From Paramicrosporidium saccamoebae KSL3 (taxonomy: Eukaryota > Fungi > Cryptomycota), in NCBI GenBank assembly GCA_002794465.1, contig MTSL01000076.1, positions 1-21,250 on the forward strand: DNA of 21,250 bases, read 5' to 3'. This document shows, in pieces, positions 13,474-18,332 of the stretch (the first letter of the stretch is position 1; each line of letters begins with the position of its first letter). The notes under the pieces are model-generated. The model did not search any database, was not told the origin of the DNA, and saw only the letters and a program-made list of their open reading frames with translations. A program made the position numbers and the translations under genes.

Positions 13474-13966
13474 CTATGGACAAGGCGGGAGGAACTTTGA
13501 GGGCGGTTTGCGATGACCGTAGCCTTCAAAGAGCTCGTATATGCTATACACTCGACACTCCAATCCGGGTCGTTTCACATTGCCATACAGAGAGGCTTCA
13601 ATAATGTCCAGCTCCGGCTCGGTGTATTTTCGGGCGCAGCTGTAGCCTGCCAGTTTGGTGGGGTCGTTGGATTCGTTGCCCTTGTACCGATTGACCCGGG
13701 TTTGTAGGATCTGGCAATTACTCACTTCAGTCTTTCCACCCTTTGAGAACGGCGTAATGTGATCATATTCATGACAGAGACAGCCCTCGCAGCCTCGAAG
13801 TCGGTACGACACGATATTACCTGTCGCGTCCAGACGCCATCTGTCACCGTCACGGCCAGGTGCTTCGGTCGACTGCAATTAATCCACTCAAAACGCCTAC
13901 CTTTTTCCAACACTGTTCCTTCATTAATCGCGTAAAGATGCGAAGGTCCCCCTCCGTTGCGGTCAT
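13474..13966 (-). CDS. Stand-alone HNH-family endonuclease-like protein, 2 exons, 154 aa
   Basis: Exons 13966-13901 and 13872-13474; intron 13873-13900 (gtaggc...ttaattgcag). MTATEGDLRIFTRLMKEQCWKKSTEAPGRDGDRWRLDATGNIV..CEGCLCHEYDHITPFSKGG....NCQILQTRVNRYK: DH..P.SKGG..N...N beta-beta-alpha-metal motif. Confidence 0.88.
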
Positions 13967-14085
13967 TTACTGAAAATTAATTACCGCACTTCCAGAGCAA
14001 TTCCAATGTAAGCGACTGAATTTGCATGAGGCTAATAGTAAGACTGTTTATTAGAATCTATAGGTGTACCATTTCAAAAATACAT

Positions 14086-15030
14086 TTATTCCTGTTGCAT
14101 CAATCTACGGGCACGTTCTCGGAGCTGCAAGGTAACGTCATCATCAGAGGAGTAGGAAGAAGAGACAGGTGATCTAGGAGATGCGGGTGATGCAGGTGAT
14201 CCGGGTGGGGTGGCGGGAGCGTGCATACGACGAGGTGGGGACAGGGAGATTTGCCGACGTGAAGATTGAGAGCCTTGCTTCTGTGGTGATTTATGACGGA
14301 TTGGACTACAGCTTGGAAGTCTAGTATTCTGTCGTCGGGGACTTTGTCGTTCTGGGACGTGTCTCTCTGGACTGTGTCTCCTTGAACTGTGCCTCTCTGG
14401 ACTATGTCTCCTTGAACTGTGTCTTTCTGGACTGTGTCTCCTTGAATTGTATCTCTGTGGACTGCGCCTTACCGGACTATACCTTGATGGACTACACCTT
14501 GATGGACTATGCCTTGATGGACTATGCCTTGATGGGCTGCGAAAAGTTTGACGACGGGATGTATTGTCATTCCTCTTGCCATATCTTTTATTATTCCCAC
14601 CATTGTTTCCTTTGAGAGCTTCTCGTTCCGTTTCTTCTTGCAAGACTTTTTTGTATTCTTCTTCTAGTTCTATGGGTATTCCCCCGTTCTGCTTTGCCTT
14701 GCCAACCCATCCCCACAACTCAAAGACGAATTTTTCGGCATGGTCAGCTCCCATGAAGGGAGTTAGGAGAACTCGAAGGTCACCAGCCTCGACCGTTTCA
14801 CGCTCAGCCAGCGTATTGATGACGAGTTCAAGTAGCACTTCATCAGAAATTCCCACCAACTCGGAGAGTCTGCGGTCCATCCAACCCCGCAGACTAGGAA
14901 GAACAACACCAACGAGAGAGAGACGAGTTAGGGTGGAAAGGGATTTGGAAAGTTTGGCCTGTTGTCGTTCGTAGCGAACATCACCACTCTTGACGCCAGG
15001 TAGAAAGGTGCCACCACTACCTCCTCCCAT
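14086..15030 (-). CDS. SRRM1: PWI-domain RS-repeat splicing factor, SRRM1/SRm160-like, 314 aa
   Basis: N-terminus aligns with SRRM1 (F..G...D.R...Q.KL; W...R..E..G..D.V..E...N.L; L..F.....A..F..ELW; ..GIP), followed by SP.R repeats. Confidence 0.85.
   Translation of the reverse strand: MGGGSGGTFLPGVKSGDVRYERQQAKLSKSLSTLTRLSLVGVVLPSLRGWMDRRLSELVGISDEVLLELVINTLAERETVEAGDLRVLLTPFMGADHAEKFVFELWGWVGKAKQNGGIPIELEEEYKKVLQEETEREALKGNNGGNNKRYGKRNDNTSRRQTFRSPSRHSPSRHSPSRCSPSRYSPVRRSPQRYNSRRHSPERHSSRRHSPERHSSRRHSPERHVPERQSPRRQNTRLPSCSPIRHKSPQKQGSQSSRRQISLSPPRRMHAPATPPGSPASPASPRSPVSSSYSSDDDVTLQLRERARRLMQQE
14340..14538 (-). repeat. Coding 15-bp tandem repeat (SPSRH / SPERH / SSRRH pentapeptides) with a 30-bp higher-order dimer
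   Basis: ccttgatggactayr units around 14480-14538; alternating SPERH-SSRRH units around 14360-14450. Confidence 0.9.
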
Positions 15031-16723
15031 GTCACCGACTGACCGCGGTTACACAGATATGGACGACATGGAAGGCATAGAAGGAATGGACGACTCGCTG
15101 TACGACTTGGAGTCGGTGGATTATTCCAGTCTGTCAGTGGCACTGGCTGAGCAGTTGCAGGGCGTGGATGGCCATTTCAACATGTTGCCGTATCTTGAGC
15201 CGTCCGCCGACTTGTCCCAATTGCTAATACTGAATCGAAGATACCAACAGACGCTGCGAGAACAGTTGGTGGCGGTGGAAGAGGCCCAGAAGACGACGAG
15301 GGAACTGCAACGATGGCTAAAGATGCTGGAAACGCAACTGCGGAACCGCAAAAAACCTACAGACGGCGTTTTTGCTCTACCCCGTGCCATTGTCGACCGT
15401 CGAGGCAATACTCCACCCGAAGATGCAGAAACACGGCATTACCGTCAAGTGTTGATGGAATACAATAGGGCGCTGCGTTTTACACTGCGATGGTCGGAAC
15501 GCGAACGGTTCTGTTTGGCACGGGGAGTGCGTCAACAGAACCGTCTACTCTTGGTGGACCAAATTCTGGATGGAGAACACATTTTGGGTTATATGGGTTA
15601 TGGGAGGGTGCAGGTTTATGAGCAGGCAGTGGAGACGGTGCGTCGGATGAGCGAGAGAGAGTTGGAAATGAATTTGGAAGGATTAGATTGGACGCAGATG
15701 TCCATCTCGCATGTTCCCTCACGATCAGCCGATGACTGTCGGATCCAATGGACTACAAATGATCATCCTGTAATCAGTCATGCGCCCTTTCTTCCCGAAG
15801 AAAAAGAGCGTCTCGCTGCATTGGTGAAAAAGTATGGGCCACGGGGAGAATGGGTGACAATTGCAAAAAGTCTGCAGAGTAATCGGACGGCGTGGCAATG
15901 TCTGGCGCAATGGCAATTGCGGAACAACCGGGCCCGCGGAGGAGGCAAATGGACAGCCGATGAGGATCGTATTCTTATTGAAGGAGTACGCATGGGCGGT
16001 CTGGACAGTTGGGCGGAGATTAGCGAATTGTTGGATGGACGGTCGGTCAGCCAATGCACCCATCGATGGAGCAAAACTCTTGATCCGTCTAAACGGATTG
16101 GTCGTTGGACGGAAACGGAAGATGCGTGGCTATTGGCGGCAGTAAGACGGTTGGGCTGTATGAACTGGGCCCTCATAAGGGACTTTGTTCCCCGGCGCAC
16201 CGATGTCCAATGTCGGGAGCGCTATATGAATGTATTGCATCCCAATCTGATCCACAACATCTTTTCCCCCGAAGAGGAGGAAACCTTGCGCAGGGCTGTG
16301 GAAAAGTACGGAGAGGGGAGATGGTCACTGGTGGCAGCAATGCTGCGCACTCGCACTGATAACCAATGTCGACGACGATGGATGTCCATGCGGACGGGAA
16401 AGCCCGAGAAGCCGCGCAAAAGACTCGGTCGACCGAAAAAGCCTACCAAGCCACCTCGAGGACGTCCCCGAAAGAGGCATGTCGAGAATAAAGAGCCTGA
16501 TGAAGCAGATGGATCAGGTAGAGTGGATGAGGCGGGTGAATTAGGTAAAGTGGGTGAATCTAGTAACTCGGGGAAATCTATCAACTCGAGAAAGTCTGCC
16601 AACTCGGAGAGACCTAACAACTTGGGGAAGTCTACCAGCTCGGAAAACTCTGGAGAATCTGATAATCCTGAAAAATCTACACATTCCACAAGACTCAAGA
16701 GATCCAAGAAATCTAATAAATGA
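15029..16723 (+). CDS. SNAPC4: snRNA-activating protein complex subunit 4 (SNAP190)-like Myb protein
   Basis: N-terminal LILNRRYQQTL.EQL coiled-coil like SNAPC4 LQLN..YQ..I.EKL; PPE.AET; RW...ER..L..GV; half Myb repeat (LDW..MS...V.SRS..DCR..W...DHP.I) plus four full Myb repeats. First in-frame ATG is 15029; 15059 has better context. The ORF-track start at 14990 is TTG. Confidence 0.85.
   Translation: MSPTDRGYTDMDDMEGIEGMDDSLYDLESVDYSSLSVALAEQLQGVDGHFNMLPYLEPSADLSQLLILNRRYQQTLREQLVAVEEAQKTTRELQRWLKMLETQLRNRKKPTDGVFALPRAIVDRRGNTPPEDAETRHYRQVLMEYNRALRFTLRWSERERFCLARGVRQQNRLLLVDQILDGEHILGYMGYGRVQVYEQAVETVRRMSERELEMNLEGLDWTQMSISHVPSRSADDCRIQWTTNDHPVISHAPFLPEEKERLAALVKKYGPRGEWVTIAKSLQSNRTAWQCLAQWQLRNNRARGGGKWTADEDRILIEGVRMGGLDSWAEISELLDGRSVSQCTHRWSKTLDPSKRIGRWTETEDAWLLAAVRRLGCMNWALIRDFVPRRTDVQCRERYMNVLHPNLIHNIFSPEEEETLRRAVEKYGEGRWSLVAAMLRTRTDNQCRRRWMSMRTGKPEKPRKRLGRPKKPTKPPRGRPRKRHVENKEPDEADGSGRVDEAGELGKVGESSNSGKSINSRKSANSERPNNLGKSTSSENSGESDNPEKSTHSTRLKRSKKSNK
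16565..16654 (+). repeat. Coding 18-bp degenerate tandem repeat x5 (NSGKSI-like) in the SNAPC4 tail
   Basis: Units at 16565 aactcggggaaatctatc, 16583, 16601, 16619 and 16637. Confidence 0.8.
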
Positions 16724-16897: not shown

Positions 16898-17359
16898 TTA
16901 CTCAATTAGAGAACCAACCATCTTGAACAGATAGTAGAAAAATGAAAGCAGAAAAAAACCCAACTTGGCAAATGACTCTTTCTTCTTGGCGGGCATCACT
17001 CTAAAAACATCGGTTGGCTCGATCCGTGTTCGTCCGTCCCGCAGCTGCACCGCCATGTACGCTACAAGAGGTACGTTCCATAAAACCCCCGTGATCTGCA
17101 GGCCGAGTAGTAGCAGACCTGACAGAAAAAAGTGAAGGAATACTTCGGGAATGAAAAACTATCATTAGACTCGTCAGTCTGGTTTACCTGGTTGAGCCGA
17201 CGACATAGGTCGATCGGGTTGACATAGTCCATCTCCAGGTCTGAGAACATTATTATCTACAGGTCATCCAAATGACATTGGGGGTACATAGTAAACATTG
17301 ATGAAGAGGAGGACGGCCGACAAGAGGGCCGCCGTCAAGAAGAGCAAAGTCACCAGCAT
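16898..17359 (-). CDS. ERV14: Cornichon / Erv14 ER cargo receptor, 3 exons, 133 aa (not in the ORF track as one gene)
   Basis: Exons 17359-17288, 17256-17188, 17158-16898; introns 17257-17287 and 17159-17187. MLVTLLFLTAALLSAVLLFINVYYIIMFSDLEMDYVNPIDLCRRLNQFFIPEVFLH...WNVPLVAY...PTDVFR....KKESFAKLGFFLLSFFYYLFKMVGSLIE; has the DLE.DY.NPI.LC, NVPL.AY and KESF.KLGF signatures. Confidence 0.96.
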
Positions 17360-17367
17360 GACCCCGG

Positions 17368-18276
17368 ATGACCCCGTTGGTGGAATATGCGCTGCTTGAC
17401 CCCGACAGTCGTCAGGAATGGGTGGTGCCGGTGTTGCGTGAATATCTGCCGCAAATTGGCAGCCTTCCAGAGGCTGAGGTGGTTTGGGGACTGTGGCTTG
17501 AGGGTCTGTGGACGGGAATGGACGATGTTTTGACAGCGGTAGCCCTGCAGGCGCTACTTCAGGATCGAACCGCTTCCCTCTCGTTGGATCCAAAACGATT
17601 AATGCAGGCCAATTTGATCCAAAAAGGCATTGTATTCTGGAGGATATATTTGCATCTTCTTCAGCGGGTCATTGCGTCCATTGACAAGTTTGATGTGATT
17701 ACTTTTTTATTCCCATATGCCGAGGATTTGGATTGTCGTCGGATTATCATTTCCTTTATACATCAGCTGTTTTTGGAGAATGCGTCTCTTATCAAGAGGT
17801 TTCACAGTTCACCCTATCCAGTGGAGATGGTTCCCTGGATGGTAGAGTATGCACCCTCTACCCGTAAGAACATTAGGGTTGTCTAAGTTTTAGATGTTCT
17901 CATTGAATCAGTTCCGGCCCAGATTACCGCCGCACAAGCTCTCGATCTGTTCCGCGCCCACTTGGGAGTCAATCTGGCCCTCAAATATCCTTTGCCTGCA
18001 ACCCAGGATCTTTGCCAACGAATCATTAACCATTGCCAAAAGTACGGCGCCTCGACTGTCTCGGATGCAAAAGAGTCGCTCAAGATTATGGTGCTGGCCC
18101 TCAAGGCCTTTCCAAATCTCATGCCCATGGTGGCTCCCGTACTGGCGACCTGGACGGGGATGTTTGGCGCGGAGCCCGAATTTGTCGCAGCCACCTTGAC
18201 AGCGGCGCAGCAGATTGCTCAGATCACAGCCCTTGTACAGCTGCCCATCTACCGCAAGAGACAGAGTGTCTTGTAG
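17368..18276 (+). CDS. INTS2: Integrator subunit 2-like protein, C-terminal region only, 2 exons, 292 aa
   Basis: Exons 17368-17863 and 17894-18276; intron 17864-17893 (gtaaga...ctaagttttag). LSLDP..L; RRIIISFIHQLFLEN.SL.K.FH..PYP.E..P..V...PSTHVLIES.P; LALKYPLP; AFP.L. These parallel the recalled INTS2 C-terminus (ICS.LHQM.I..P...KLVHFQGYP.ELL...V.GIPSMH; Y.LPKS; AFPPL). Confidence 0.72.
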
Positions 18277-18332
18277 GAGGGAAGGATGGTGAGATCTAAC
18301 ATGTAAAGTAAAAAATAATGGATTGGTGTTAA

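Follow-up and report, generated by a model that had tools for sequence, protein, structure and literature searches.

Paramicrosporidium saccamoebae KSL3 (MTSL00000000) is an intranuclear parasite of amoebae; the authors of its genome put the gene space at more than 76%, reported Paramicrosporidium as sister to Microsporidia, and generated stranded poly(A) RNA-seq from spores (PMC5701793). The window that we analyzed is a stretch of 21,250 nucleotides, bases 1 to 21250 of contig MTSL01000076.1 (assembly GCA_002794465.1, a metagenome bin built with Velvet). In it, a gene for an SRRM1/SRm160-like PWI protein and a gene for a SNAPC4 (SNAP190)-like protein are transcribed away from each other, and the gene order around them is Forkhead(-), HNH(-), PWI(-), SNAPC4(+), cornichon(-), INTS2(+), kinesin(+) (Table 1). 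An earlier note on this DNA had proposed that the first start codons of the PWI and SNAPC4 genes share a single CATG palindrome; its allusion to microsporidia came close to the actual lineage. We compared the locus with that of the relatives L002, L004 to L011, and L013, and with L012, which came from a profile scan. L013 and L009 are independent metagenomic contigs from different organisms, and L013 is the closest relative, with 86% protein identity to the window over the N-terminal part of SNAPC4. A metagenome scan with a three-sequence PWI profile gave 276 pattern matches with no relative among them, and a scan with a SNAPC4 profile gave a single match, L012, at 36% identity.

Table 1. Features at and around the junction of the PWI and SNAPC4 genes, in window coordinates
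Feature	Position	Strand	Details
SRRM1/SRm160-like PWI protein, coding sequence	14086..15030	(-)	314 aa; start ATG 15030-15028
CATG	15028..15031	(.)	PWI start codon with C at -1; plus-strand ATG (15029) in SNAPC4 frame, probably unused
Spacer, PWI ATG to conserved SNAPC4 ATG	15031..15067	(.)	37 bp; 28 bp to annotated ATG 15059; also an inversion junction
Conserved 8-mer GACCGCGG	15041..15048	(.)	part of palindrome ACCGCGGT at 15042-15049
SNAPC4 (SNAP190)-like coding sequence as annotated	15059..16723	(+)	554 aa; NCBI model P0001 starts at 15059
Cornichon-INTS2 head-to-head pair	17357..17370	cornichon ATG 17359 (-), INTS2 ATG 17368 (+)	8 bp apart
Other inversion junction	18277..18332	(.)	56-bp spacer, INTS2 stop to kinesin ATG 18333

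The PWI domain lies at the extreme N-terminus of the PWI protein (residues 47 to 114; Pfam PF01480, 2e-11), and the protein matches the solved structures PDB 1mp1 (2.5e-9) and human SRRM1 (6ff4_Y, 5e-9), with query residue 15 opposite residue 12 of the latter. A word-index protein search with the PWI N-terminus returned no match, and an exhaustive HMMER search was used instead. In its alignments, query residue 5 pairs with residue 2 in dozens of homologues. Orthologues begin with MAGGTFLPGVK, MGGTFLPGVK, or MGGGTFLPGVK, and the window with MGGGSGGTFLPGVK. Six codons ahead of the PWI ATG there is an in-frame TAA, and the next Met is residue 51, within the PWI domain, so that CAT at 15028-15030 is, as the earlier note had stated, the sole Met upstream of that domain. 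Since the homologues that start at this very residue number in the dozens, we regard the assignment of this codon as the PWI start as firm on the strength of homology. The match to homologues from residue 2 onward also means that no missing upstream exon is needed, and the spliced upstream exon that the earlier note had considered was thus not found for this gene.

The C-terminal region of the PWI protein is Arg/Ser rich and repetitive (RHSPSR/RHSPER repeats) and is coded by degenerate 15-nt tandem units between 14324 and 14540, with eight copies in register; the length of this tail differs widely between orthologues (proteins of 240 to 391 aa). The very C-terminus, ...RERARRLMQQE, is conserved, and orthologues all stop directly after ...RERARRLMxxE. 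The deposited model (13474-15030, minus strand) joins the PWI open reading frame (ORF) and a downstream HNH-like ORF (13474-13878) into one 396-aa product. Because the PWI orthologues all stop at the same conserved C-terminus, this fusion model is probably chimeric. An exact look-up of the 314-aa PWI ORF found no record, since what was deposited is the fusion of 396 aa. In place of an ATG, the HNH-like ORF has TTG in the window and GTG in L002, and it may have a small upstream exon.

The SNAPC4-like protein has four Myb stretches (9e-57), and its top solved structures are those of human SNAPC4 (7xur_A, 1.6e-47). The alignment, of query residues 55 to 447 with residues 103 to 517, takes in both the N-terminal helical part and the Myb repeats. 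The names SRRM1 and SNAPC4 given to the two genes in the earlier note are borne out by Pfam domains and human solved-structure matches, and on this evidence both identities hold. By the same homology, the SNAPC4-like protein would be expected to bind the small nuclear RNA (snRNA) promoter element as part of SNAPc.

The plus-strand ORF that contains SNAPC4 is open from 14975 and has in-frame ATGs at 15029, 15059, 15068, and 15086, the first of them being the Met that the earlier note had identified as such. The first conserved SNAPC4 block (DY..LS..LAxQLQ; 12 relatives) begins directly after ATG 15086. The gap to the PWI start is therefore at most 55 bp, and a SNAPC4 start far downstream, which would have left an ordinary gap, is barred by this block. 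The range of 28 to 55 bp proposed for the downstream ATGs was accordingly confirmed, with 55 bp as its upper limit and 28 to 37 bp as the true gap. ATG 15068 is the one conserved in all three lineages in which PWI and SNAPC4 are neighbors (the window, L013, and L009): the 9-mer ATGGAAGGC at this site is identical in L009 (position 542), and the first in-frame ATG of L013 (MDGIDGMDD) aligns with it (MEGIEGMDD). In L013, the SNAPC4 frame has a TAG upstream and no ATG before MDGIDGMDD. ATG 15059, the annotated start, lies opposite ATA in L013 and is thus specific to the lineage of the window. The sequence context is cccATGt at 15029, with C at -3 and T at +4, versus gatATGg and gacATGg at the downstream ATGs. 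Taken with the alignments, this makes 15059 or the conserved 15068 the most likely SNAPC4 start, and not the CATG. An N-terminal extension of SNAPC4 from the DRG codons that the window has in common with L009 was rejected, since L013 has no in-frame ATG upstream of them.

The 5' end of SNAPC4 (15059-15094) contains three in-frame ATGs and no out-of-frame ATG, and ATGGACGAC occurs twice in it. There are two in-frame ATGs at this end in L013 and three in L009, and relatives with the ancestral gene order described below have a single ATG before the DY..LS block. Multiple in-frame ATGs may buffer imprecise transcription starts of SNAPC4. In L002, the contig end upstream of SNAPC4 (1-135) carries four copies of CATTCTCTCC and then a long pyrimidine tract, which ends in CAG 17 nt before the SNAPC4 ATG; this looks like either a 3' splice site or a repeat at which the assembly broke off.

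The proposal of shared start codons therefore survived in one half. The CATG is real and the PWI gene starts there, but L013, in which the frame is broken, argues against a SNAPC4 start at the same place. L013 has the same CATG at its PWI start and the same head-to-head junction; its plus-strand ATG is out of the SNAPC4 frame and reads MSQLTAAATK (10 codons) and then TAG, owing to a 1-nt indel between the CATG and the conserved SNAPC4 ATG. This comparison speaks against overlapping coding sequences in which both start codons are translated. Across the contig, C at -1, and hence CATG, occurs at 5 of about 15 annotated starts, and the chance of finding C at -1 together with the right frame and nine open codons is about 7%. 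The palindrome is probably a by-product of the PWI start context, and the sharing of the start codon a coincidence. Translation of SNAPC4 from ATG 15029, with the two coding sequences overlapping by 2 nt in one CATG, would account for an ATG that is in frame and open with CCTCCTCCC directly upstream, and for the DRG codons downstream of it that are identical in L009. We nevertheless consider it very improbable in view of the indel, frameshift, and TAG in L013, the weak context, the ease with which chance produces the arrangement, and the annotators' choice of 15059. The microsporidian CCC signal was also rejected as support for ATG 15029: CCC is found within 15 nt of the ATG at only about 3 of 15 starts (ATG 15029, INTS2, and SAM), precedes neither the PWI start nor 15059 or 15068, and so is no general signal here.

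In the relatives, the genes are ordered kinesin(-), SNAPC4(+), cornichon(-), INTS2(+), PWI(+), HNH(+), Forkhead(+). The divergent kinesin-SNAPC4 pair is present in L004 to L008 and L011, and INTS2(+) is followed by PWI(+) in L002, L007, L008, and L010; the derived order, with PWI next to SNAPC4, is common to the window, L013, and L009. As judged from gene order, this comparison shows that the PWI-SNAPC4 junction was created by inversion of a block of about 3.3 kb (SNAPC4-cornichon-INTS2) in an ancestor of this lineage, and that SNAPC4 thereby exchanged its divergent partner, kinesin, for the PWI gene. Both breakpoints fall within tiny spacers (Table 1). The N-terminus of the window kinesin, MYPTSRIPVPRSVKR, matches those of the kinesins that lie head to head with SNAPC4 in relatives, and the outer flanks (SAM, Methyltransf_10, and RPN11) are collinear with those of the relatives once the block is flipped. 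PWI protein identity to the window is 76% for L009, 67% for L010, and 62% for L002, which groups the window with L009. All genes at the inversion junctions keep intact, conserved reading frames, and we infer that they continued to be expressed after losing the DNA that had lain upstream of them.

An artefact, with two loci misassembled into one or an upstream exon hidden by a wrong gene model, could be suspected in a Velvet metagenome bin whose NCBI model for the PWI gene is itself probably chimeric with the HNH-like ORF. Yet the same adjacency is carried by L013 and L009, and both N-termini agree with homologues. Inverted repeats, a sign of flip-flop inversion or assembly ambiguity, were looked for at the two junctions and none were found, so that no repeats flank them. 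An artefact is thus extremely improbable in our judgment; with the derived order on two independent contigs, the junction is neither the local misassembly that the earlier note had allowed for nor a recent event. In L004 (8025-13719), INTS2 and cornichon have as a pair the opposite orientation with respect to SNAPC4, and there is an inserted mannosyltransferase gene; several small inversions have therefore taken place in this neighborhood across the clade.

The earlier note had described the spacing as an extreme case, which did not hold up. Kinesin-SNAPC4 gaps in the relatives, in which the kinesin start is fixed by the N-terminus M-x-SRIPVPRS.KR, are 30 bp in L007, 38 bp in L004, 143 bp in L011, and 286 bp in L008. 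In the window itself, the start codons of cornichon and INTS2 are even closer together (Table 1), and each is the sole candidate ATG upstream of conserved protein sequence. These two genes lie head to head in every relative examined, with gaps of 8 to 225 bp (14 to 20 bp in L002, 2325-2348; about 26 bp in L010, 689-716). The first cornichon exon ends at a 31-nt intron (gtaccc...tag). Comparable values are reported for Giardia muris, in which the median size of intergenic regions is 37 bp and 9.5% of genes overlap a neighbor (PMC7641422). The tight PWI-SNAPC4 spacing is typical of the clade and of other compact eukaryotes and is no new kind of gene organization.

The gap between the PWI and SNAPC4 starts is 28 to 37 bp in the window, 36 bp in L013, and up to 281 bp in L009. 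The argument of the earlier note that there is no room for two separate promoters and two leaders stands, a gap of 36 to 37 bp being kept in a second lineage (L013). In the alignment of the window with L013, which is about 88% identical overall, the spacer is 64% identical, and 50% identical outside one fully conserved 10-nt run, CTGACCGCGG (counted manually from the alignment). The 8-mer GACCGCGG is identical in L013 (75-82) and in L009 (581-574). L009 keeps GACCGCGGT, with the sole CCGCGG of its 2470-bp contig, directly 5' of the SNAPC4 start region, and its PWI ATG is about 240 bp away. The 8-mer ends 19 nt short of the conserved SNAPC4 ATG in both the window and L013, and 31 nt short of it in L009. 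None of the relatives that have the ancestral order carries the motif upstream of SNAPC4 or PWI. Its conservation in a spacer that otherwise evolves fast makes GACCGCGG a candidate cis element tied to SNAPC4 or to a shared promoter.

Other explanations of the spacer sequence were discarded. The 8-mer is not coding sequence, since L013 has no in-frame ATG upstream of it. CCGCGG is not a general promoter motif (6 sites in the window versus 3.7 expected, the other five within coding regions), and the human snRNA proximal element, compared by eye with the spacer, was dropped after TCACC alone matched. The long spacer of L009 (543-823) contains a 44-bp stretch of 11% GC beside the PWI ATG and an in-frame tandem duplication of about 54 nt.

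Since two conventional promoters do not fit into the spacer, promoter DNA must extend into the coding region of the partner. The reading that we favor, with somewhat better than even confidence, is that of a stable head-to-head pair with a spacer of 28 to 37 bp that was brought together by the inversion and is served by a minimal bidirectional promoter common to both genes, the leaders being very short. The spacer and the first tens of bases of each coding sequence would constitute one minimal bidirectional RNA polymerase II (Pol II) initiation region, with leaders of at most about 10 to 20 nt and both transcription start sites (TSSs) within the spacer or at its edges. GACCGCGG, which lies beside the SNAPC4 start even in the long spacer of L009, would be the candidate promoter element. 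For PWI, an upstream element may be provided by the 19 A/T-richer nucleotides that separate GACCGCGG from the SNAPC4 ATG, and the several in-frame ATGs with which SNAPC4 begins would allow for imprecision in the start sites.

Short leaders are favored, first, because upstream ATGs are not depleted directly beside annotated starts. In the window and L001, an upstream ATG occurs within 17 nt of the start in 5 of 15 genes, whose starts are unverified, versus 4.0 expected at random, which hints at very short leaders genome-wide. The distances are -9 for ACAD, -10 for INTS2, -13 for orf324, -15 for kinesin, and -17 for g243. Short leaders are favored also because TSSs located deeper in the partner gene would place upstream open reading frames (uORFs) in the PWI leader of the window and the SNAPC4 leader of L013, because GACCGCGG stays beside the SNAPC4 start where space is plentiful (L009), and because leaders in E. 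cuniculi are shorter than 7 nt (PMC2803860).

A serious rival, which was the first alternative of the earlier note and which we regard as unlikely though well worth weighing, is a pair of crossed promoters. Each TSS would then lie within the coding sequence of the partner, giving complementary mRNA 5' ends and possible mutual interference. A Pol II preinitiation complex needs more than 28 to 37 bp, so that promoter DNA overlaps the partner's coding sequence in any case, and about 208 nt upstream of 15029 are free of ATGs on the plus strand. Overlapping transcription was found at more than 80% of the tested E. cuniculi loci (PMC2803860), and sense/antisense dependence has been described for human genes that overlap head to head (PMC11890862). 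Against this, with a PWI TSS beyond 15069 the leader would include in-frame upstream ATGs at -39 and -48 (a short uORF), and a SNAPC4 TSS upstream of the CATG in L013 would add a 10-codon uORF that ends 5 nt before the main ATG; in L009, where the spacer is long and upstream ATGs abound in it, the element is still found right beside the SNAPC4 start.

Alternatively, there might be no dedicated promoter, one or both genes being expressed mainly from long read-through or multigene transcripts begun elsewhere. Multigene transcripts have been reported from spores of Antonospora locustae, and transcription overrun from E. cuniculi (PMC2803860); spore RNA evidence went into the fused PWI-HNH model, which may be a sign of read-through; and tandem spacers are tiny as well, such as the one between INTS2 and kinesin. 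However, read-through from a neighbor into a divergent pair yields antisense RNA, so that each gene needs initiation near the junction, and the conserved GACCGCGG argues for a local signal; we consider this possibility improbable.

Several observations weigh against the shared minimal promoter that we favor, or against parts of the history proposed for it. ATG 15029 is in frame and open and has CCC, a microsporidian start-proximal motif, ahead of it, and the ATG-free stretch upstream of it would permit a TSS within the PWI coding sequence. The GC content of the spacer in the window is 57%, and no clear TATA-like element is seen in it. The SNAPC4 frame of L009 is open over the 80 codons that precede the conserved start, and an N-terminal extension may exist there. 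Taken alone, the SNAPC4 N-terminal identities (56% for L009 versus 55% for L002) do not place L009 with the window, and the upstream-ATG statistic covers a small set of genes. Finally, we infer the TSS positions, the leader lengths, and any role of GACCGCGG from sequence.

The locus illustrates the extent to which promoter space can contract in a reported sister lineage of Microsporidia, and its reading is corrected here with respect to both the SNAPC4 start and the probably chimeric PWI-HNH model. An inversion with breakpoints in spacers of tens of bases amounts to a dated natural experiment, and GACCGCGG is a short conserved element to test; together, the two provide handles for the study of minimal promoters. 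It is tempting, but in our view doubtful, to go further and take the 36- to 37-bp interval with its one conserved 8-bp CGCG-type element as a complete bidirectional Pol II promoter, assembled anew after the inversion. If so, promoter function would need almost no dedicated DNA and would travel with a gene's own 5' end, and the inversion would be a natural promoter swap, with four genes keeping intact frames despite each losing its former upstream neighbor.

Among known systems, microsporidia (E. cuniculi and A. locustae) resemble P. saccamoebae as a related lineage with spacers too short for separate promoters (PMC2803860), and the lack of upstream-ATG depletion in P. saccamoebae fits the ultra-short microsporidian 5' untranslated regions. 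In contrast, CCC-like and AAATTT-like signals are not general in P. saccamoebae, and the window has no CCC-like motif directly upstream of most starts. Head-to-head overlaps in E. cuniculi proved to be very rare after start-codon correction, with 9 left of 129 (PMC2803860). The bidirectional promoters of yeast and mammals likewise serve two divergent genes from one short regulatory interval, and overlapping pairs such as INO80E/HIRIP3 are among them (PMC11890862). The PWI-SNAPC4 interval has a near-central palindromic element, and in orientation and spacing the pair fits what is expected of a shared bidirectional promoter (divergent genes with less than 1 kb between their 5' ends) at 28 to 37 bp from start to start, an arrangement kept in L013 and L009. 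Typical divergent TSS pairs are about 100 to 1000 bp apart, whereas the 28 to 37 bp given here are measured between start codons; furthermore, the partner of SNAPC4 was swapped by the inversion, so the pairing is not functionally ancient. Giardia belongs to an unrelated lineage and has AT-rich, initiator-type promoters, whereas the conserved element of P. saccamoebae is GC rich. Intergenic spacing in Giardia is nonetheless comparable or tighter, and in G. muris small rearrangements are associated with tighter gene packing, as at the PWI-SNAPC4 locus (PMC7641422).

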